Shown here in pieces: positions 45,637 to 56,734 of a stretch of 64,000 bases of DNA. The stretch covers positions 3,782,001 through 3,846,000 of the forward strand of contig OZ251225.1 of NCBI GenBank assembly GCA_965240325.2, read 5' to 3'. The position numbers and the translations under genes were made by a program. The notes beneath the pieces are model-generated. The model was not told where the DNA came from. It did not search any database and saw only the letters and a list, made by a program, of their open reading frames with translations. Each line of letters starts with the position of its first letter. Positions within the stretch are counted from its first letter, which is position 1. Source of the DNA: Rebecca billardiae RCC1528. Its lineage: Eukaryota; Protista; Haptophyta.

Positions 45637-46770
45637 ATGGCGGCGTTCGCGCGCGCGCTCGCGGTTCTGGGCTTGCCCGATGATGGCTCCGTGACGGAGG
45701 CGGCGGCGAAGAGCGCCTTCAAGCGCCTTGCGCTGCGCCACCACCCCGACAAGAACCACGGCTCCGCCGAGGCGCACGACGCGTTCAAGCGCGTCAGCGA
45801 GGCGTACCGCACCGTGTGCCTCGCGCTGCGCGAGCGCGAGGGCGCGGACGAGCTGCTCGCCGACCCGCTCGCCGAGCTCTTCGGGGAGGGCTGGGCGCGC
45901 AAGTTCGCAGAGGGCTCTGTCGACCCATCCGCCGTGCTCGACGACGCGCGCGCCCGCGCGGCAGCCGAGCTGGGCCTCCCGGCGGACGAGGGCAGCGCCG
46001 GCCCCGACCTCCTGCTGGCGGAGGGCGGCGCCAACCCGTTCGCCGAATTCTTCGACGCTCTGCCGCCGGAGGAGCGCGGGCCGATGATGGCGCTGTTCGA
46101 GCAGACGTTCCCCGCGTTCCTCGCCGCCGAGCTCGAGGAGCAGCAGCTCAGCGCCGAGAACGCGTCCTTCGCGGCGGAGGCGTTGGGGGCGGGCGGCGCG
46201 CCGCCCCCGCCGGCCGAGCGCGCGCCCGAGGAGGCGCGAGCGCGCGCGCAGGCGAGGAACGACCAGGCGGTGGAGGCGTTCGCGAGCGGCCGTCTGGATG
46301 CGGCGATCGAGCACCTGGGCGCGGCCATCGCCATCGACGCGCGCAACCCGTCCTTCTACGGCAACCGCTCCCTCGCGCACGAGCGGCGCGGCGACCTCGA
46401 CGCCGCGCTCGCGGACGCGCAGAGCTGCGTCGCACTCGACCCGTCGTACGCGCTCGGCCACGCGCGGCTCGGCGCGGCACTCGGCGCGCTCGGGCAGTTC
46501 GCGCGCGCGCAGGCGGCGTATGAGCGCGGGCTGCTCGTCGACCCCGAGTGCGAGCCTTGCGTCGACGGCGCCCGCGAGGCCGCGCGGCGCGCAGCCGAGC
46601 ACAAGCTGCGCATCATCCGCGCGGGGCAGCAGCGCGTGCCCTCGCTCGGACCTTCGCGCGCCGGGCCCGGCGGCGCCGACGAGCACCGCGACGCGGAAGA
46701 GGCGCTTCCGCGCCTGCTCGCAGCGCAAGCGACGCTGTCGCCGTCAGTCGCCACCGACGGCCGCGGCTGA
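45637..46770 (+). CDS. J-domain (DnaJ) + TPR co-chaperone
   Basis: KSAFKRLALRHHPDKN..FKRVSEAY; TPR AIAIDARNPSFYGNRSLA..ALADAQSCVALDPSY..RLGAAL..AYERGL. Confidence 0.9.
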   Translation: MAAFARALAVLGLPDDGSVTEAAAKSAFKRLALRHHPDKNHGSAEAHDAFKRVSEAYRTVCLALREREGADELLADPLAELFGEGWARKFAEGSVDPSAVLDDARARAAAELGLPADEGSAGPDLLLAEGGANPFAEFFDALPPEERGPMMALFEQTFPAFLAAELEEQQLSAENASFAAEALGAGGAPPPPAERAPEEARARAQARNDQAVEAFASGRLDAAIEHLGAAIAIDARNPSFYGNRSLAHERRGDLDAALADAQSCVALDPSYALGHARLGAALGALGQFARAQAAYERGLLVDPECEPCVDGAREAARRAAEHKLRIIRAGQQRVPSLGPSRAGPGGADEHRDAEEALPRLLAAQATLSPSVATDGRG

Positions 46771-47130: not shown

Positions 47131-50100
47131 TCAGGACGATGCGGAGGACGCGGCCGAGGACCCAGCGACCGTCGTCGGCGTCGCGCCGCCGGCGTGATGC
47201 GCGCGCGCGGCGGCGGCGGCGGCGGTGCGATGCTTGAGCGGCGGCGCGCGCTGGTCGGCGTCGCTGGGGGCGAGGGGCCGCGCCTCGTGCGGCCCGGTGT
47301 AGCGCTGCGCGGGCGAGCCCGCCCACGTCTCGCCTGGCCCGACGGTCTCGCCCTTGAGCACGGTCGCGAGCTCGAGCAGCGTGCCCTCCGCCTCGACGCG
47401 CGCGCCGGGCAGCGCGCCCGCCTGCGTGCGCACGCTCGCGCGATCGCCCACGTGCACCTTGCGTATGCGCAGCACGAGGTGCTCGACCGTGTGCGCGCCC
47501 AAGTCTGAGAAGGTGACGGCGGCGCGCTCGCCCACCTCGAGCATGTCCCAGTCCGCGCTCCACAGCTCGAAGAGGCACGCGTCCCGCCCCACGCGCGCGC
47601 CGAGCGCGCGGTACAGCACGTTGCAGTACGCGCTGCCGGAGAACATGTGCAGCGCCTCCACCATGTTGCGGTTGAGCAGCAGCATCAGCACCCAGCGCGC
47701 GTGGAAGGCGCTGTAGAACGGGAAGTCGCCCTCCGCCATCCGGCCGATGATCGCCCACTTGAGGCCGATGTGCAGCGCGATGTGCGCGCACAGCGTACCG
47801 GCGAGCGCGAGCGGCGTGCTCGCGATCACGACGGGCAGCGGCGCGCCCGCGCCCGCGAGCGCCAGCTCGAGGCCGACCGCGCCCGCGCCGACCGCCTCGG
47901 TGAGCGGCGCGACAAGCAGCACCGCGCTCAGCCCCCACGCCTGGAAGGCGTGCCAGCGCCATGAGGTGTGCCCGGCCCACGCAGCGCGCGCCGCCTTGGT
48001 CGCGGGGTCGCTGGGCGGGAGCGCCTCGAGCGGGCGCGACTTGGTGAGGTACACCGACTTGCCGCCCGCGTTGCCGATCCGCGTCTCGCGCGGCGCGATG
48101 GCCCCGTCGACGATGGTGGTGGTGCCGACCACGGCGCCCTCGCCCACGTCCGCGCCGCCGAGCAGCGCGCAGTTGTCTAGCACGGCGGCGCGGCGGCGCA
48201 CGGTGACGCGGCGCAGCGTGCCCGCCGCGTCCATCGGCTCGACGTGCACGTACGCGCCGAACGTGACGCTGTCCTCCACGGTGAGCAGGTCGTGCTGGTA
48301 CAGCTGCAGGTTGTCGATCTGCACGCGCCGGCCGATGGTGGCGCCCAGCAGCCGCAGCTTGCACGACAGCAGCTCGAGCGAGCCCCACGGCTCGAGCGCG
48401 TCCTGCGTGAAGCGCGAGAAGACGAGCAGCTCCATCAGCCAGTGGCGGAAGAGCTCCCACTCGCTCTGCGCCGCGGGCCCCTCGCGGAACCGCCCGACCA
48501 CGCCCCACTTCACCGCCACCACCAGCGCAAACAGCGCCTCGGAGTAGACGAACGTGAGTACCCACGTGACGGCGCCACCAAAGAGCAGCAGCCGCGCGGC
48601 CGGGGGGAGCGCGGGCGCGGCGCCGTCGAGCGCGGCCCACACGGCCTCGAGCGCGTACACGCACGGCACGAACGCCACGCCGAGGACGAGCAGCTGCAGC
48701 GGCAGCCCGAGCGCGACGCGCAGCAGCGCCTGCGGCGCGCACTGCGAGCGGAGTCGGCGCGGCGCGCCCGCCGGCCGCGGCCGCAGCACGTTGGCGCCGC
48801 CGCCCGAGGTGGACACCGCGCCCATCTCGGTGTCGGGCGGCACGCTGGTGCCGGCGGGCACGCTCGCGCCCACGCCGATCACGCTGCGCGCGCCCACCTC
48901 CACGCCGCGCAGCACGAGCAGCCCGTCCTGCACGTAGAAGCCCCCCAGCGAGACCGCGCGCCCCACGACCGCGTCCGCGCCCACGCGCAGCATGTCAGGC
49001 TCGCGCACAGACACCGCGGCGTGCAGCTCGACGCGCGGGCCGATGGTGGCGCCGAGTGCGCGGTACCACGCGGGGAGGAGCGGCGTGCCCATCAGCAGCG
49101 GCTTGAGCGACTCCGTCGCCGCCTCCTCGAACCGCCGCGCCGCCCACCAGCGCAGGTAGTACGCCCCCCACAGCGGGTACTGCCCCGGCCGCACTGCGCC
49201 CACCAGCGCCCACTTGAGCAGCAGCGCGAGCAGGGCGCCCAGGAGCACGGTCGCGAGGATGGCGGCGGGCAGCGCGGCGAAGGCGGCCGCGCGGCCGTAC
49301 CGCGCGTACACCTCGTACGCGCCGTAGTACGCCGGGTAGTACGCCACGTCCTCGAAGCACACCGACGCGAGCACCGTCGCACCCTGCACGAGCAGCGCGG
49401 CGGGCGCGCTGCTGGAGTGGCCGTGGTAGGGGCGCGGGGGAGGGCGCGGCGGCGCGCCGTGGTGCGCGGCGCGGGCTGCGGCGGCCTCGGGGTCGGCGGA
49501 CCCGCCGCCGCGCGCGCCCGCGCCCGCGCCCGCGCTCCCCCCGAGCCCCTCCTCGGGCAGCGTGCGCGCGTGCGCCGCGAGCGCCTCGATGGTCTCGTGG
49601 TTGTACACCGCCACGGTCTGCAGCTGCGCGTGCACGCGCGCGCGGAGGAGGGTGGCGACGCGGCCGGCGAGGAGCGAGTTGCCGCCGAGCGCGACGAACT
49701 CGGCGCGCACCGAGATCTCCTCCGCCGTCTCCAGCGCCTCCTGCCACACGCCGTGGATCGCGAGCTCGAGCTCGTCGCGCGGCGGCACGTGCGGCGGCGC
49801 GGCGTGCGCGGCCGCGGCCGCGCCGCCCGCGAGCGCGCCGAGCGAGAGCGTGCGCGCGCGCGGCGGCGCGGCGAGCGCGGCGCCGGGCGGCGGCGGCGGC
49901 GGCAGCGCCTTCCGATCGAGCTTGCCGTTGTGCGTGAGCGGCATCGCGCGCAGCACCACCACCGCCGACGGCACCATGTACGCGGGCAGCGCGCGCGCCG
50001 CGGCCTGCCGCACGTCGTCCGCGCGCACCGCGCGGCCGCCGCCGCCGGCCGTCACGTAAGCCACCAGGCGGTGCGAGGCGGTGGAGGCGCCGACGAGGAG

Positions 50101-52539
50101 GACGGCGACCTGCGAGACGCCCGGCGCGCGCGCGCACGCCGCCTCCACCTCGCCCAGCTCGATCCGGAAGCCGCGCAGCTTCACCTGCGAGTCGCGCCGC
50201 CCGGCGAACTCGAGCTGACCGCTTGGCAGCCAGCGCGCGAGGTCGCCCGTGCGGTACAGCCGGCCGCGGCCAAACGGGTTGGGGAGGAAGGCGGCGGCGC
50301 TGAGCTCGGGGCGGCCGACGTACCCGCGCGCGACGCCCTCGCCGCAGAAGCAGATCTCGCCGAGCTCGCCCAGCGCCACGTGGCTCGGCGCGCCGCCCGG
50401 CGCCGCCCCCCAGCGCAGCAGCCGCACGGTGGTGCACTCGATCGGCCGGCCGATCAGCACGCGCAGCGGCGGAGCAGCCGCGTCGAGCGCGCGCGCGCCG
50501 AGGTCGGGGCACGCCCAGTGGGTCATGTCCGCCTCGGTCGGGCCGTACAGGTTGTGCAGCCGCGGCGCGCTCGGGAAGACGCCCGCCGCGCAGTACCGCG
50601 CCACCAGCTCGCCCGGCACGCCCTCGCCCGCCAGCAGCACCGCGCGCACGGCGCGCAGCCCGCGCTCGCGCGCCGCGCCGCGCTCGCTCGCCGCGTCGAG
50701 CAGCGCCGAGAGGTGCGACGGGACGAAGAAGGCGACGGTGATGCCCGCGGCGCGCATCAGCGCGAGCAGCTCGTCCGCGCGCCTGTGCACCTCCGGCGGC
50801 GCCACCTGCAGCACCGCGCCGTGCGTGGGCGCCCAGAACAGCTCCCACTCGCTCACGCCAAACACGTACGGCGTCTTGTGCAGCACGCGGTCGGAGGCGC
50901 GCAGGGCGAAGGCGCGCTGCAGCCAGCGCGTGCGGCCGACGAGGCCGCGGTGCTCGACCTGCGTGCCCTTGGGGCGGCCGGTCGTGCCCGACGTGAAGAA
51001 GACGTACACCAGGTCGGACGCGCGCGCCGGCCCGCGCTCGCCCGCGCGCAGCGGCGGCGCGGCGCGCGCGGCGGCGGCCGCGGCCGCGGCCGCGGCCTCC
51101 GCCTCGGCCGCGGCGCGCGCCGCCGCGCCGCGGCCGCCCGGCCACGCGGGCGCACGCCGCGGCTTCGCGCCGCGCTGCGGCACCTCGCCCTCCGCGCCGC
51201 CGCCGCCGCCGCCCTCCGCGCGCGCGCCTCCGCCGGGCGGCAGCAGCTCCTCCAGCGTGAGCACCACGCCGCCCCAGCCGGGCGGCACCAGCTGCGCCGT
51301 GCTGGCCTGCGCGAGCAGCGTGCGCGCGCGCGTGTCGTCGAGGATCATGCGCATGCGCTCGGCGGGGTACTCCGCGTCGATGGGCACGTACGCGCCGCCC
51401 GCGCGCAGCACGCCGTAGATCGCCGCGACCGTCTCCGCCGAGCGGCGCAGCAGCAGCGCGACGAGCCCGCCGCGGCCGACGCCCGCCGCGGCCAGCGCGC
51501 CGCCCACGCGCGCGCTCGCGGCGTCCAGCTGAGCGTACGTGTACGCGCGCGTCTCCGAGCGCACGGCGAGCGCCGCCGGCGTGCGCGCCGCCTGGCGCAG
51601 CATCATCCCGTGGATGGTCGCCCCCGCCTCCGACTCGGCCTCCGCCTCCGCCCCCGCCTCCGCCCCCGCCGCCTCGGAGGCTGCAGGGCGCTCGGCGGCG
51701 GCCGGCTCGGCAGCGCCCGCGCCGCGCCCTCCGCCGCCGGCGCCGAGCAGGCCGGTCGCGCCGAGCAGGCCGCGCACACCCGGCAGCCACGAGCGCGCCT
51801 CCCCGCTCGGCCACGCGCGCGCCACCAGCTCGAGCTCCGCCTCGGACGACAGCCGCACCTCGCGCGCGCGCGCGCGCGCGTCGCTCGCGCACGCGAGCAG
51901 CAGCGCGCGCGCGTGCGCGAGCACGATGGCGGCCGAGCGCTCGTCGTGGTGCTCGCGGCTGAAGACGAGCGTGATGCGCGCACCCGACGGAAATGCCTCG
52001 CGGTACTCGCTCAGCGCGAGCGCGAGCTCGAGGCACGAGTGCGGCCGCTCGGCGGAGGGCGCGGGGCCGAGCCGGTGCGCGCACTCCGCGTCGAGCGCGC
52101 GACCCGAGAGCGTCGCCGCGCCGCGCTGCGCAGCGCGCGCGCCGAGGCAGGCGAGCTGGACCGCGTGCACGCCCACGCTCGCGCCGCTCGGGTGGCCCGC
52201 GCTCGACGCGGCGAGGAGGCCGCCGAGGGTCGTGTCGTCGTCGACGGCCAGCGCCACACGCTGCACCGTCGTGACGTCGGGCGCGCTCGCACGGCCGACA
52301 AAGACCTCGTCCTCGCCCGCGTACCGCGCGCCAAGCGCGCCGAGCGATGCGACGAGTGCGTCGAGCGGGGGAGCGTTCTGGGCAGCGCACGCGCCGAGGA
52401 GCGCCGCGTGCTGCACCGCGTCGAGGTCGACGCCCACCGCGCCGAACGCGCGCGCCGTGGGCTTGCGCGAGCGGACGTGGGCCGCGACGTGCGGCAGGTC
52501 GATGAGCGCGGTCTCCTCGTCGGCAGCGCCACTCGTCAT
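47131..52539 (-). CDS. Pls/PosA-type membrane-bound NRPS-like synthetase (partial C - A - PCP - three TM/hexapeptide-repeat domains), intronless
   Basis: A cores TYAQL, LRAGGAYVPID, YVFFTSGTTGRPKG, NLYGPTE, GEICFCGEGVARGY, YRTGDL, GRRDSQVKLRGFRIELGEVE, LPAYMVP, NGKLDR; PCP FVALGGNSLL; three repeats KW..G..(P/E)G..W / LGA.(I/V)G followed by hexapeptide runs; terminal WAGSPA. Confidence 0.92.
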   Translation of the reverse strand: MTSGAADEETALIDLPHVAAHVRSRKPTARAFGAVGVDLDAVQHAALLGACAAQNAPPLDALVASLGALGARYAGEDEVFVGRASAPDVTTVQRVALAVDDDTTLGGLLAASSAGHPSGASVGVHAVQLACLGARAAQRGAATLSGRALDAECAHRLGPAPSAERPHSCLELALALSEYREAFPSGARITLVFSREHHDERSAAIVLAHARALLLACASDARARAREVRLSSEAELELVARAWPSGEARSWLPGVRGLLGATGLLGAGGGGRGAGAAEPAAAERPAASEAAGAEAGAEAEAESEAGATIHGMMLRQAARTPAALAVRSETRAYTYAQLDAASARVGGALAAAGVGRGGLVALLLRRSAETVAAIYGVLRAGGAYVPIDAEYPAERMRMILDDTRARTLLAQASTAQLVPPGWGGVVLTLEELLPPGGGARAEGGGGGGAEGEVPQRGAKPRRAPAWPGGRGAAARAAAEAEAAAAAAAAAARAAPPLRAGERGPARASDLVYVFFTSGTTGRPKGTQVEHRGLVGRTRWLQRAFALRASDRVLHKTPYVFGVSEWELFWAPTHGAVLQVAPPEVHRRADELLALMRAAGITVAFFVPSHLSALLDAASERGAARERGLRAVRAVLLAGEGVPGELVARYCAAGVFPSAPRLHNLYGPTEADMTHWACPDLGARALDAAAPPLRVLIGRPIECTTVRLLRWGAAPGGAPSHVALGELGEICFCGEGVARGYVGRPELSAAAFLPNPFGRGRLYRTGDLARWLPSGQLEFAGRRDSQVKLRGFRIELGEVEAACARAPGVSQVAVLLVGASTASHRLVAYVTAGGGGRAVRADDVRQAAARALPAYMVPSAVVVLRAMPLTHNGKLDRKALPPPPPPGAALAAPPRARTLSLGALAGGAAAAAHAAPPHVPPRDELELAIHGVWQEALETAEEISVRAEFVALGGNSLLAGRVATLLRARVHAQLQTVAVYNHETIEALAAHARTLPEEGLGGSAGAGAGARGGGSADPEAAAARAAHHGAPPRPPPRPYHGHSSSAPAALLVQGATVLASVCFEDVAYYPAYYGAYEVYARYGRAAAFAALPAAILATVLLGALLALLLKWALVGAVRPGQYPLWGAYYLRWWAARRFEEAATESLKPLLMGTPLLPAWYRALGATIGPRVELHAAVSVREPDMLRVGADAVVGRAVSLGGFYVQDGLLVLRGVEVGARSVIGVGASVPAGTSVPPDTEMGAVSTSGGGANVLRPRPAGAPRRLRSQCAPQALLRVALGLPLQLLVLGVAFVPCVYALEAVWAALDGAAPALPPAARLLLFGGAVTWVLTFVYSEALFALVVAVKWGVVGRFREGPAAQSEWELFRHWLMELLVFSRFTQDALEPWGSLELLSCKLRLLGATIGRRVQIDNLQLYQHDLLTVEDSVTFGAYVHVEPMDAAGTLRRVTVRRRAAVLDNCALLGGADVGEGAVVGTTTIVDGAIAPRETRIGNAGGKSVYLTKSRPLEALPPSDPATKAARAAWAGHTSWRWHAFQAWGLSAVLLVAPLTEAVGAGAVGLELALAGAGAPLPVVIASTPLALAGTLCAHIALHIGLKWAIIGRMAEGDFPFYSAFHARWVLMLLLNRNMVEALHMFSGSAYCNVLYRALGARVGRDACLFELWSADWDMLEVGERAAVTFSDLGAHTVEHLVLRIRKVHVGDRASVRTQAGALPGARVEAEGTLLELATVLKGETVGPGETWAGSPAQRYTGPHEARPLAPSDADQRAPPLKHRTAAAAAARAHHAGGATPTTVAGSSAASSASS

Positions 52540-53521
52540 GCCCGCGCCACTCCTTTCGTCACTCCTTTCTCGGCGTTCGCGAGCCGGTGGCTCGGTGGCG
52601 ACGCAGGCGGGCGGTCGCCGTGGAAGCGAAGCGAGCGCGCGGTCGGTAAACTGGGAGGGGGCTTGTGCTCACGACCACGACGCGAAAGCGGACGGATTAT
52701 CATATAAAAGATGAGTGCCAATAATCATGATGATGAGCGGATGATGAGCCCGAACCGGCAGATTAATCAATCAGATACTACTACGACTACTATGGATAAG
52801 TAGATAATCTGCTCGCGGTTTCCCCCCAATAGTAGTATTAATTAGACCGCGATAGATAGCCCTAAAAATGAGCCTGTCATCACGTCGTTGGTCGTTGCTC
52901 GGCCGACCCTGAACATGGAACCCAACCGGCTGTCATTAGCGGTGGGGAACAACGCCACTCCAGCAGTCCAGCGCCGTCTCGCAAGCCTTTCCGCTCGGCC
53001 GGCCATCACTCGCGATTCGCACACGTCGCGCCGTGACAATGTGTGCAAGTCGAGAGCAATTCTGCCAGCTTGTGCCAAGACTGACAGACAAAACGCCGCC
53101 GCACGAATTGCGCACAGCTGCGGCACAGCACTGCCCGAAGGACAACGTTGTCCGTTGTCATCACATTGTCAACGAATCCGTAGTGCTGTAGTTGTTAATG
53201 TAAGTGAATTTTGACTGCATTATAATAAAACTGTTGAGGCCGTGCCGCCCGGCGGCCGCAGCACTGTGCCCGCGTGGGCACCGCGGCCGACGGGACTGGC
53301 CGCCCGCGCAGGACGGCCCTCGGCGCGGGCCGGACCACGCGGCCTGAGTAAGGCGGGCGGATGTACATATCGCGGTAACTCTCTCGGTCGTCACGGCACT
53401 AACTACCGGCCACGGGACACCGTGGACTGTCACGGTCACGACGTCAGTGTGCCTGTGTCATCATCATGCATGGCACTCGTACTAGCTCGTCCGAGCAAGG
53501 CCTTCCGGCCGTGGCGACTCG

Positions 53522-54607
53522 TCAGCCAGAAGCATCGTCCTCGTTGCTGTCATCCGTATCTCCGTACGCGCCGAGAGCTGCCAAGCCCGGCGCCGCCGCG
53601 ACTGGCTTGGAAGTCCCCGCGCCGTCCGCGACGGCCGCGCCCCCTTCGGACTGTGGCGCTGCGCGCGCGTCAGTCGCCGCGCCGGCAGCCGGCACTGCGG
53701 CGGCAACGAGTCCGGCGCTCGCCGCTCCCGGCGCGGCCTTTGGCTTGGGCTGCACGGCGAACGCTGGCTTGAGCGTCGCGCCCGCGCGCGGCAGCGGCTT
53801 GGCGTTCGGCGCGCCGCCGAGCGCCGCCGACGAGCCGCCGCCGCCGCCGTCTCGGCGCGGTGGCTCGGGCGGCTCGAGCCTCGGCGCGCCGGGCAGCCGC
53901 AGTGAGCCGAGCACGTCGTCGTCGTCGTCGTCGTCGCTGGGCGCGCGCGCGCGCTTGGCGCGGGCAAAGGCCTTGCGCACGGCCTCCTCGTCCTCGTCGT
54001 CGAGCGGGGCCGCCCCGCTCTGCTCCGCCGCCTCGGCCGCCTGCCGCGCCTTCTCGCGCTCCGCCGCCTCGTCCGCGCGCTTCTTGGCGATCAGCGCGTC
54101 AAGGTTGGCGCTGTTGTTGCGCGCGTTCATCGTGCGCAGCTCGTCGAGCGTGTCGAGGATGTCCATCTCGAGCTTCGAGTCCTTGGTGCGGTTCTCGAGC
54201 CGCTTCATCGCGTCCGACCCGTCCTCCTCCGCGCGCTGCGCGTGCGCCGCCTCCACCTCCGCCTCGCGGTCTCGCCACGGCTCATAGTTGCGGTGCGCGC
54301 CCGCCTCGACCACATAGTCCTCGTTCTGAGGGTCGGTCTTGATGCAGAACTCGGCGCGGCAGTTGGTGCAGTTCATGTAGAAGCGGATGATCCGGATGCC
54401 CAGGTAGTCCTCGCCCTCCACGTTCTCGCGCCGCGAGTTGAACTTGCGCCCCTTGTACATGTACTCGCCGCACGCCTTGCAGCGCACCGACATGGGCAGC
54501 ATCATGCGCACGACATACTGGTCGTTCTTCGCGCGCTTCTTGCGCGGGATCTTCTCCGGGTCGTAGTCCGGCCCGAAGTACTTGTTCAGCACCTTGCGCT
54601 CGCCCAT
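53522..54607 (-). CDS. YJU2: Splicing factor YJU2 (CCDC94/Cwc16)
   Basis: MGERKVLNKY..DYDP..VRMMLPMSVRCKACGEYMYKGRKFN..YLGIRIIRFYMNCTNC..KTDPQNEDYVVEAGAHRN; LENRTKDSKLEMDILDTLDELR. Confidence 0.95.
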   Translation of the reverse strand: MGERKVLNKYFGPDYDPEKIPRKKRAKNDQYVVRMMLPMSVRCKACGEYMYKGRKFNSRRENVEGEDYLGIRIIRFYMNCTNCRAEFCIKTDPQNEDYVVEAGAHRNYEPWRDREAEVEAAHAQRAEEDGSDAMKRLENRTKDSKLEMDILDTLDELRTMNARNNSANLDALIAKKRADEAAEREKARQAAEAAEQSGAAPLDDEDEEAVRKAFARAKRARAPSDDDDDDDVLGSLRLPGAPRLEPPEPPRRDGGGGGSSAALGGAPNAKPLPRAGATLKPAFAVQPKPKAAPGAASAGLVAAAVPAAGAATDARAAPQSEGGAAVADGAGTSKPVAAAPGLAALGAYGDTDDSNEDDASG

Positions 54608-54814: not shown

Positions 54815-56734
54815 ATGCTGTGGCTGCCGCTCCTCATCGCGTCGGCGTCACGTGTGGCGCGCGTGCCGTCGGTGCCGGCCGCACGCGTCGCCTCCCCTCG
54901 GGCGATGGCGGCGCACATGTCCTCCGCCGCGCCGCCCACGCACGAGGCGGACGTGATGGTCGTGGGCGCCGGGCCGGCGGGCACCATCCTGGTGCGCGCT
55001 CGCCCCGCGCGCGAGGACACGCTGCTAGCCCACCCGCGCGCGCGCTGATAGCAGCACTCCCGCCCTACGCGCCGCACCATCCCCCTTGCCTCGCCGCGCC
55101 CTCCCGCCCGGCTGCAGGCGTGGCAGCTCGCTGAGAAGCACAAGCTGAGCGTTGTCCTCGCGGACGCGGGCGTGGACAAGCCGTGGCCCAACAACTACGG
55201 CGTGTGGATCCACGAGTGGGAGGGTGCGCGCGCGCGCCGGCGCTCTCCCCTACCACCGCGCGCCTCGCCCCGCCCGACTCACGCCCGCGCCACCCGCGCC
55301 GCGCGCGTGCGCAGCCCTGGAGCACACGCTGAGCCTGGGGCTGGGCGAGTGCCTCGACTACACGTGGACGTACACCGACGCGTTCCTCGGCGGCGAGGGG
55401 AGCAGCGGCGTGCCCGAGGACTACAAGCTGCGCATCAACAAGGTGCGCGCGCGCGCGCGCGCGCGTGCCGCCGCTGGCGCCGCGCCGCCCATCCCACCGC
55501 GCCGCGCCGAGCCGAGCCGCGCGCCCGCGCGCGCCGCTCGCCCGCGCGCCTGCCGCGCCCGCAGCCGTACGCGCGCGTGAACCGCAAGAAGCTCAAGGAG
55601 CGCGCGATGGCCGGCTGCGAGCGCGGCGGCGTGACGTTCGTGCGCTCAAACGTCGGCAGCGGCGCCCCGGGCTCGCCGCCCATCGCGCACCAGCCCGACG
55701 CCTCCGTCGTGACGTGCGCGGACGGCAGCGTGGTGCGCGCGCGGCTCGTGGTCGACGCGACCGGCTCGGCGTCCACGCTGACGAAGCGCGTGGGCGAGGA
55801 CAACCCGGGGGTGCAGATCGCGTACGGCGTGATGGTCGACGTGGACGACCACCCGTTCGACGAGGACGCGATGCTCTTCATGGACTTCCGCACCAACTGG
55901 CTCGGCGCCGACTCGGTGCGCACGGCCGGCCAGTTTGGGTCCGCGGCCGGGCGCGCGGTCACGCGTGAGAGCGTCGAGGGCGCGCCCACCTTCCTGTACA
56001 CGATGCCGATGGGGGAGGGGGAGGGCGGGAGCCGGCGCGTGTTCTTCGAGGAGACCTCCCTCGTCGCGCGCCCGCCGATGGACTTCGACGAGTGCAGGGC
56101 GCGCCTCGAGCTGCGCCTCGCCCACCTGGGCGTGGGCGTGCGCGCGGTGCTGGAGGAGGAGCTGTGCTACATCCCGATGGGCGGCGCACTGCCGAGCGCG
56201 TACCAGCGCGTGCTCGCGATCGGGGGGGCGGCGGGCACGGTGCACGCCGCGACGGGGTACATGCTGTGCCGCATGCTCGCCTCGTCCGCCTTCGTCGCCG
56301 ACGAGATCAGCCGCTCGCTCGGCCAGGCCGCGGCGGCCGGCGGCGCGTTCGACGCGGACGGCGCGGCCGCGCGCGTGTACGGCGCGCTCTGGCCCAAGGA
56401 GAACCGGCTGCAGCGCGACTTCTGCGTGTTCGGCGGCGAGTACCTGATGCGGCAGAGGGTGCAGGGCCTGCGCGGCTTCTTCGGCGGCTTCTTCGACCTG
56501 CCCGAGGCGCAGTGGACCGGCTTCCTCGCCGGCTGGCCCGGGCTGCCCGGCAACGAGCAGCACGACGTGTGGCACAAGCGGCTGCTGTTTGGCATCGGGC
56601 TGTGGCTGCGCGTGCCGAGCCAGGTGAAGCTCAACCTCGTGCTGGGCGCCGTGCAGCTCGGGGGGCTGCCCTTCTTCCGCTGCGTGCTCCCCGTGCTGCA
56701 GGACACGACGCTCGAGGAGCCCGCCGCGCAGTAG
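54815..56734 (+). CDS. LCYB: Lycopene cyclase (CrtL type, probably beta), plastid-targeted; 3 introns
   Basis: DVMVVGAGPAG, WPNNYGVW, YARVNRKKLK, VVDATG, QIAYG, MDFR, PTFLYTMP, FFEETSLVARP, EEELCYIPMGG, GGAAGTVHAATGY. Introns 54992-55117, 55224-55314, 55443-55564 restore one frame. Confidence 0.92.

Follow-up and report, generated by a model that had tools for sequence, protein, structure and literature searches.

The window analysed here is a 64,000-nucleotide stretch of the haptophyte Rebecca billardiae RCC1528 (contig OZ251225.1, positions 3,782,001 to 3,846,000), and the gene in question occupies its minus strand at 47131–52539 as one uninterrupted open reading frame (ORF) of 1802 amino acids. 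The encoded protein resembles a single module of a nonribosomal peptide synthetase (NRPS) in which half a condensation (C) domain, an adenylation (A) domain, a carrier (T) domain and a Pls-type membrane tail follow one another. Within the A domain, the anchoring aspartate of the substrate pocket (Asp235, GrsA numbering) is replaced by glycine, a glutamate stands at position 238, and the β13–β14 loop is shortened. These features recur throughout a family of mainly protist proteins that appears, judging from its sequences, to couple a polymerase-like membrane tail with a loader that gave up α-amino-acid recognition.

Pfam recognises the A domain as AMP-binding (229 bits, residues 305–740) followed by AMP-binding_C (797–873), and the domain passes TIGR01733, the model for amino-acid adenylation domains, with 352 bits against a cutoff of 317. 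A motif scan of the query finds A3, A5, A7, A8, A10 and the carrier motif GGNS all intact. The tail scores 233.9 bits with TIGR02353, the Pls/PosA terminal domain, which lies under the cutoff of 423.1. Its hydropathy profile resolves paired hydrophobic segments at about residues 1044–1118, 1268–1349 and 1534–1589, corresponding to six helices in three pairs, and a KW..[VI]G motif follows each pair (1109, 1344 and 1594). The helix pairs separate three soluble β-helix segments, as in the Pls/PosA layout with about 180 residues for each segment. The features of the gene are as follows:

47131..52539, minus strand: whole gene, a single ORF of 1802 residues (translation, Pfam, NCBIfam)
51832..52506, minus strand: N-terminal remnant, the C-terminal lobe of a condensation domain, residues 12–236 (custom C-domain hidden Markov model, HMM)
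49900..51627, minus strand: adenylation domain, residues 305–880, with all core motifs present (Pfam, TIGR01733, motif scan)
51025..51282, minus strand: Ala/Gly/Arg-rich low-complexity insert in the A2–A3 interval, about residues 420–505 (translation; skipped by HMMER alignments to solved A domains)
50833..50877, minus strand: motif A4, KTPYVFGVSEWELFW (translation, HMMER alignment)
50728..50730, minus strand: Phe604, code position 278, His in serine-type relatives (code alignment)
50629..50637, minus strand: Leu635 to Ala637, code positions 299 and 301, the latter Ser in serine-type relatives and Cys/Ala in the family
about 50515..50556, minus strand: motif A5 and the shortened β13–β14 loop, NLYGPTEADMTHW, with Leu664 at position 322
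50527–50529, minus strand: Asp671, the Asp of Ser-code position 331, shifted by the two-residue deletion (code alignment)
49921..49923, minus strand: Lys873, the equivalent of GrsA Lys517 in A10, NGKLDR (alignment, motif scan)
49570..49758, minus strand: carrier (T) domain, residues 928–990 (Pfam PP-binding, 34 bits)
49675–49677, minus strand: attachment Ser955 inside GGNSL (motif scan)
47290..49422, minus strand: Pls/PosA-type tail, about residues 1040–1750 (TIGR02353, hydropathy, motifs)
47491–47493, minus strand: invariant His1683, motif HTVE (tail alignment)

The insert between A2 and A3 spans about 85 residues, and similar drift at the N- and C-termini fits the extreme GC (guanine plus cytosine) content, which runs at 0.74–0.80 along the gene. 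Around the synthetase lie a Saf4/Yju2 splicing factor (53522–54607, minus strand), which is its upstream neighbour on the same strand, a lycopene cyclase (55172–56734, plus strand) and a DnaJ-TPR protein (45637–46770, plus strand). These neighbours are ordinary and unrelated to the synthetase, and the locus is therefore nuclear and eukaryotic, without a biosynthetic cluster.

Substrate pocket of the adenylation domain

Gly561 is encoded by GGC at 50857–50859 (minus strand) and aligns with GrsA Asp235; in HMMER alignments to LgrA it falls on the Asp of the FDIS/FDGS segment. The translated A4 context reads LHKTPYVFGVSEWELFWAPT (longer reading LHKTPYVFGVSEWELFW) and that of A5 reads RLHNLYGPTEADMTHWACP (longer reading RLHNLYGPTEADMTHW), so that both motifs and the glycine codon stand as an earlier note on this DNA, made from the sequence without database searches, had given them. 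Along A4, Val562 corresponds to position 236, Glu564 (50848–50850) to 238 and Trp565 to 239. The ten-residue code of the query is G-V-W-F-L-A-L-(deleted)-D-K, which does not match the serine code DVWH.SL[IV]DK. The same columns return the canonical DVWH.SL[IV]DK in the closest homologues, so the alignment register is sound, and these validated columns reproduce the pocket that the earlier note had aligned by hand (G-V-W-F-L-A-L-?-D-K). Past GPTE, the loop of the query is two residues shorter than in its closest relatives, in agreement with the note's comparison to serine-type domains; specifically, the β13–β14 stretch from Glu to Trp counts five residues in the query and six to seven in the relatives.

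An AlphaFold (AF2) model of residues 506–890, used for confidence and secondary structure, has a mean predicted local distance difference test (pLDDT) score of 91.4 and places Gly561 just ahead of a helix that starts at Val562 (236). Positions 235, 236, 239 and 242 are known to sit on a single helix facing the pocket. Glu238 is predicted to lie on this same helix, one turn below the lost Asp, and a helical-wheel view puts it at the edge of the pocket-facing arc.

These features are rare among A domains at large. The background comprises 982 A domains gathered by a library-wide phmmer search with the A core. Position 235 is Asp in 959 of them and Gly in 8, or under 1% (four from the family described below and four from outside it). 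Glu at 238 is restricted to family members plus one misaligned row, which upholds the note's view that this residue is unusual. In domains that have the Trp after GPTE, seven residues separate the Glu of GPTE from that Trp in 101 cases and six in 76, and a spacing of five occurs only in the family and in one unrelated domain. Similarly, about 92% of the 5,366 A domains covered by a recent survey are reported to have Asp at 235. As a means of finding orthologues, the library-wide phmmer search was rejected, since with matches ordered by their summed score it gave nothing but giant multi-module NRPSs.

A small aliphatic residue at 235 is characteristic of A domains for hydroxy, keto or aryl acids. 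Such a residue (Gly or Ala) in place of Asp235 is present here as Gly561, and it is a necessary but not a sufficient mark of the class that loads acids without an α-amine. Glycine at this site in enniatin synthetase, to which the note had also appealed, is borne out by the literature, the D-hydroxyisovalerate (D-Hiv) domain having G680. In β-amino-acid domains of the VinN type the β13–β14 loop is shorter by one residue and Asp235 is kept; the Asp235 retained there for β-amino binding is Gly561 in the query.

Distribution and descent of the family

Relatives with the same pocket were found by two routes. A first, tail-based search recovered FGVSEWE and GPTEAD[MIV]T.W in the pelagophyte Aureococcus anophagefferens and in one metagenome protein, while all 115 of the 115 other Pls/PosA-type matches carry Asp at code position 1. 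A profile search added thirteen further members, all with KTP[YF][VT]FG[IV]SEWE.FW and GPTEA[DE]MT.WEC. They include Cymbomonas tetramitiformis, a prasinophyte green alga, and the diplonemids Namystynia, Diplonema, Rhynchopus and Flectonema; the remaining ones comprise three long eukaryotic contigs, two short contigs labelled as metagenome-assembled genomes (MAGs) and two JGI proteins. The signature of Gly235, Glu238 and short loop is present in 14 of 14 aligned full-length or near-full-length relatives, drawn from a haptophyte, a pelagophyte, a prasinophyte and diplonemids. As for the homologues in which the earlier note had proposed to check FGVSEWE, every relative found has Gly, and none restores the Asp.

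Back-translation of both family motifs yields zero matches in a collection of 185,579 species genomes of bacteria and archaea; metagenome contigs give 35 matches, one of them from TARA. Given the former result, no bacterial operon context is available for the family. The 35 metagenome loci fall into two loop subtypes, ADMT and GSMT (GPTEGSMT), both of which keep Gly235 and Glu238; the GPTEGSMT subtype thus makes these two residues universal in the family and the loop Asp not. The two MAG-labelled members, assigned to Verrucomicrobiota (P0274) and Rhodospirillales (P0275), lie on contigs of 4.0 and 4.8 kb. They may be misbinned eukaryotic contigs, since both contigs are shorter than 5 kb and the motifs are absent from the prokaryote genomes. 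The family comprises undescribed, mainly eukaryotic (marine protist), single-module NRPS-like membrane synthetases, and a literature search found no paper on a synthetase family with Gly235 and Glu238. No gene cluster surrounds the Aureococcus and Cymbomonas relatives, whose neighbours are unrelated housekeeping genes. Additionally, 12 of the 14 members carry Arg two residues before Lys517 in A10 (RGK for NGK), and the query (Asn871) and Cymbomonas keep Asn; in those lineages this Arg could pair with Glu238 or make a second contact to the substrate.

The conservation of the pocket decides against the explanation that Gly235 is a sequencing error or the lineage-private decay of a dying gene, which deserves hardly any credence. 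In its favour are the extreme GC content with its Ala/Gly/Arg drift and the fact that the query tail is the longest branch of its family; moreover, the single read-derived contig spans only 50211–50383, outside the glycine codon. Against these, every relative has the same Gly with its companion changes, over four or more eukaryotic lineages, and the reading frame stays open for 1802 codons with every catalytic motif intact. A sequencing error is implausible because orthologues conserve Gly235, Glu238 and the short loop, and the pocket change appears from this comparison to be neither an error nor private decay.

A second, undescribed architecture for the Gly235/Glu238 loader is represented by three marine metagenome ORFs of 1770–2570 residues (L002:1930–7818, minus strand; L005:128–7837, plus strand; L013:912–6227, minus strand), which contain the same A type with the loop GPTEGSMT. 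In L002 and L005 the A domain is fused to a family-2 glycosyltransferase (GT2), and for L013 Pfam gives an AMP-binding domain only. Neither a carrier motif nor a Pls-type tail was found in any of the three. Several diplonemid members carry, downstream of the tail, a cholinesterase/carboxylesterase-like domain (P0276:1706–2024, P0279:1698–2029) that is absent from the query. It reads GQGSG at the GESAG nucleophile elbow and matches over only the first ~340 residues of the fold, and it is probably non-catalytic. As a sign of ester chemistry it was rejected, on account of its degenerate nucleophile motif and the partial match to the fold.

The loader itself is most closely related to serine-activating domains. 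The closest A domains (49–55% identity) all combine the code DVWH[LIFMV]SL[IV]DK with EAAVDVT.W as the loop sequence. A tree built from 89 A domains recovers the family as monophyletic (100% support) and nests it inside a clade of 57 rows with 98% support, made up of 37 Ser-code domains, 14 family members and 6 domains with near-Ser codes; the A domains of cationic polymer synthetases stand far from the family in this tree. The note's proposal of a remodelled serine-like scaffold is supported by both results. Compared column by column with the serine clade, the family shows D235G, V238E and S301C/A, a changed loop that has lost two residues (329–330) and changes at a few outer positions, and code comparisons add H278F/T/C. 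No Lys, Arg or His able to pair with Glu238 is universally gained across the 14 members relative to the serine clade.

The N-terminus points to the same source. Pfam and PDB searches with the N-terminal 310 residues of the synthetase returned no matches. A custom C-domain HMM aligns collinearly with the query, residues 12–83 matching profile positions 296–364 and residues 170–236 matching 471–533, and the HHxxxDG half of the condensation domain is absent from the N-terminus. This missing half was sought upstream (52540–53700), where all frames contain stops and no C-domain signal was detected. The diplonemid members match Pfam Condensation over profile positions 190–454 only, so a half C domain without HHxxxDG is a family trait; since the truncation is the same in diplonemids, it looks like a retained structural piece and not random decay. 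Nesting in the serine clade together with the half-C N-terminus shows that the family goes back to a C-A(Ser)-T module, half of whose condensation domain came along, and that this module was joined to a Pls-type tail.

Such descent is also one of the considerations behind a quite unlikely alternative, in which the substrate is an α-amino acid, perhaps D-configured, N-methylated or otherwise unusual and small, whose amine binds to the relocated Glu238 or to backbone carbonyls alone. Near the lost Asp, no acid other than Glu238 is new, and domains without Asp235 that activate amino acids do exist in the literature, namely McyG (Val) and ClbH-A2 (S-adenosylmethionine, SAM). However, D235G, H278F/T/C and S301C/A were replaced jointly, the loop that gives a carbonyl to the α-amine is two residues shorter, and most characterised domains without Asp or Glu at 235 activate non-amino acids (literature).

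Membrane tail and candidate monomers

The preferred reading starts from a pocket that has been rebuilt. The anchor Asp235 has become Gly, the serine-hydroxyl ligands are lost (His278 to Phe/Thr/Cys, Ser301 to Cys/Ala), and the two-residue shortening of the loop moves the old Asp331 towards the adenylate site; the new Glu238 would provide an anion deeper in a small, otherwise hydrophobic pocket, where it may hold a positive or donor group off Cα. The A domain would then adenylate a small carboxylic acid without an α-amino group, most likely one with an amino (or cationic or hydrogen-bond-donor) group one or two carbons beyond Cα, of the β-alanine or γ-aminobutyric acid (GABA) type. After loading of this acid on the carrier, the Pls-type tail would couple the thioester to a nucleophile at the membrane. 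This nucleophile could be the distal group of another monomer or of a growing chain, giving a homopolymer by analogy with polylysine, polyornithine and polymalate synthetases.

Several known substrates can be set aside on the pocket. Polylysine-type enzymes retain Asp at code position 1 and Glu at position 3, which bind the two amines of the diamino acid; in PosA these are Asp217 and Glu221, both essential. The query has Gly561 and Trp565 in their place. Because the family has Gly/Trp where PosA requires Asp/Glu, binding of lysine, ornithine or another diamino acid in the manner of the known enzymes is excluded, which agrees with the note's expectation of a product other than polylysine. Serine seems unlikely since all three of its polar ligands are replaced, and acids with an extra carboxylate, such as malate, Asp and Glu, are a poor fit for a pocket that gained acids but no base.

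That the substrate is a small acid without an α-amino group, a class that spans β/ω-amino, hydroxy and onium options, stands at about an even chance. The small β- or ω-amino acid is the favoured option, although taken by itself it is tentative, and what probability remains goes to something other than a β/ω-amino, hydroxy, unusual α-amino or onium acid. On the residues of the pocket we would favour a β/ω-amino acid over a hydroxy acid; the lean towards a donor group off Cα comes from the fixed Glu238, which tells the options apart, from the Asp or Glu kept in the loop of most members and from the lack of a universal basic gain.

The tail comparison uses an alignment of 16 tails from the family, 45 from cationic polymer synthetases and that of a fungal relative. 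His1683 (motif H[TL][VF]E) is invariant across all three tail families, and many Gly, Pro, Arg and Trp positions are also kept. The cationic-synthetase invariants E, A-D, G-N, D-R and R/E/R are replaced family-wide by Q, G-S, L-D, N-M and others. The fungal relative is a member of a fungal and algal family that combines a peroxisomal-CoA-synthetase-like loader (SYGMTE; CoA, coenzyme A), a carrier and a Pls-type tail. Members of this CoA-synthetase-like family (P0021, P0391–P0432) are wide in fungi and occur in some algae, including Pelagophyceae sp. CCMP2097 (P0400) and Coccomyxa (P0404). An unrooted tail tree resolves three clean clades, with support of 100% for the cationic polymer synthetases, 100% for the CoA-synthetase-like family and 98% for the Gly235/Glu238 family.

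These comparisons bear on the hydroxy acid alternative, the first of the options named in the note, in which a small hydroxy acid (glycolate, lactate, glycerate, 3-hydroxypropionate or 3-hydroxybutyrate) serves as the monomer, the tail forms esters and the product is a polyester. In the pocket, this reading is favoured by the glycine of the enniatin D-Hiv domain and by Ala in an engineered phenyllactate domain (literature). At the tail, the columns G-S and x-D are among several that the family shares with the fungal and algal acyl-CoA-synthetase-like proteins and not with the cationic synthetases, which have A-D and G-N there. The Aureobasidium polymalate synthetase, described as an A-like domain, a T domain and a membrane C-like domain, makes polymalate and offers an ester precedent for such a tail, and the cholinesterase-like domain of diplonemid members points in the same direction. 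That domain, however, looks non-catalytic. The published polymalate synthetase could not be confirmed among the proteins compared, P0410 having the same length (1682 residues) and no name, and a sister relation of the family tail to the presumed polyester makers is not inferable from an unrooted tree of three groups. Moreover, a new unpaired Glu together with a retained Asp or Glu would not be expected with neutral substrates and speaks against anionic ones such as malate. The hydroxy acid is accordingly held to be unlikely.

A further alternative is an onium acid, such as dimethylsulfoniopropionate (DMSP), glycine betaine or β-alanine betaine, which has no nucleophile of its own and for which Trp239, Phe278, Phe299 and Glu238 would jointly form the binding site. 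The tail would then transfer the acid to a lipid, a glycan or a small alcohol, making the protein a conjugating enzyme and not a polymerase. Onium osmolytes are abundant in marine protists, and the hosts of the family are marine protists. Trp, Phe and Phe occur at 239, 278 and 299 in many members, and the fusion of this A-domain type to GT2 enzymes suggests that another polymer is being decorated. ATRR, a fungal betaine reductase that lacks Asp235, uses an aromatic cage and one Glu (literature). The cage is nevertheless not universal, since position 278 is Thr in diplonemids and Cys in Cymbomonas, and position 299 is Ile in diplonemids and Leu in the query; no acceptor is known, and the tail retains the polymerase repeat architecture. 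On balance an onium substrate is decidedly improbable.

Several points weigh against the preferred reading of a β/ω-amino acid that is polymerised. Glu238 could be structural in the modelled helix, compensating for the loop deletion, and the loop Asp, which is Ser in the GSMT subtype, is hence not essential. Gly235 alone fits hydroxy acids equally well, and known β-amino-acid domains retain Asp235. Known tail-bearing enzymes are polymerases, and homopolymer formation by the query enzyme is suggested, by analogy, by the tail alone; this tail falls in a separate clade in which cationic-synthetase invariants are replaced. The GT2 fusions, without carrier or tail, suggest that the acid may decorate another polymer (glycans), and they are one reason why polymerisation stays an analogy.

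Were the β/ω-amino acid reading true, the product could be a natural poly(β-alanine) or poly(GABA), the backbones of nylon-3 and nylon-4; a small-hydroxy-acid polyester is the other possible outcome. The full proposition, that haptophytes, pelagophytes (among them the brown-tide alga), prasinophytes and diplonemids, as ecologically dominant marine protists, make a membrane-extruded homopolymer of a non-α-amino monomer, is unlikely as it stands. We know of no report of such a biopolymer from these four groups, and to our knowledge polylysine-type synthetases make only cationic diamino-acid polymers, plus fungal polymalate. Because the signature is conserved over several major marine protist groups, the product is probably widespread in the ocean, and a new natural polymer or a new surface modification is possible. 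The family would also offer a natural case of a serine-specific A domain converted to another substrate class through five defined changes. The substrate question is experimentally tractable, since the A-T part is of soluble type and the pocket changes are few.

Comparison with known systems

The pocket of the query retains much of the frame of serine-activating NRPS A domains of the EntF type, sharing with them the A4 frame KTP..F.VS.WE.FW as well as Val236, Trp239, Leu322, Asp331 and Lys517. Those domains sit in assembly lines, whereas the query is a stand-alone module with a membrane tail. To the enniatin D-Hiv domain and the VinN-type domains there is no close sequence relationship; none of these is reported with Glu238, and VinN loses one loop residue.

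In overall architecture, the query resembles Pls, which makes ε-poly-L-lysine, and PosA, which makes δ-poly-L-ornithine. It shares with them a single A-T module followed by a tail of about 730 residues with six transmembrane helices and three β-helix segments, the invariant His of the third segment and the lack of a thioesterase. It differs from both in the origin of its A domain, which comes from the serine-type NRPS clade, in its N-terminal half condensation domain, in a tail that forms a separate clade and scores below the TIGR02353 cutoff, and in its distribution among protists. With the polymalate and CoA-synthetase-like family it has in common the plan of a eukaryotic membrane A-T-tail enzyme with a non-amino-acid loader, which in the query would follow from the pocket changes. 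The loaders differ in kind: that of the CoA-synthetase-like family is of the acyl-CoA-synthetase type with SYGMTE, whereas that of the query is an NRPS A domain that passes TIGR01733.

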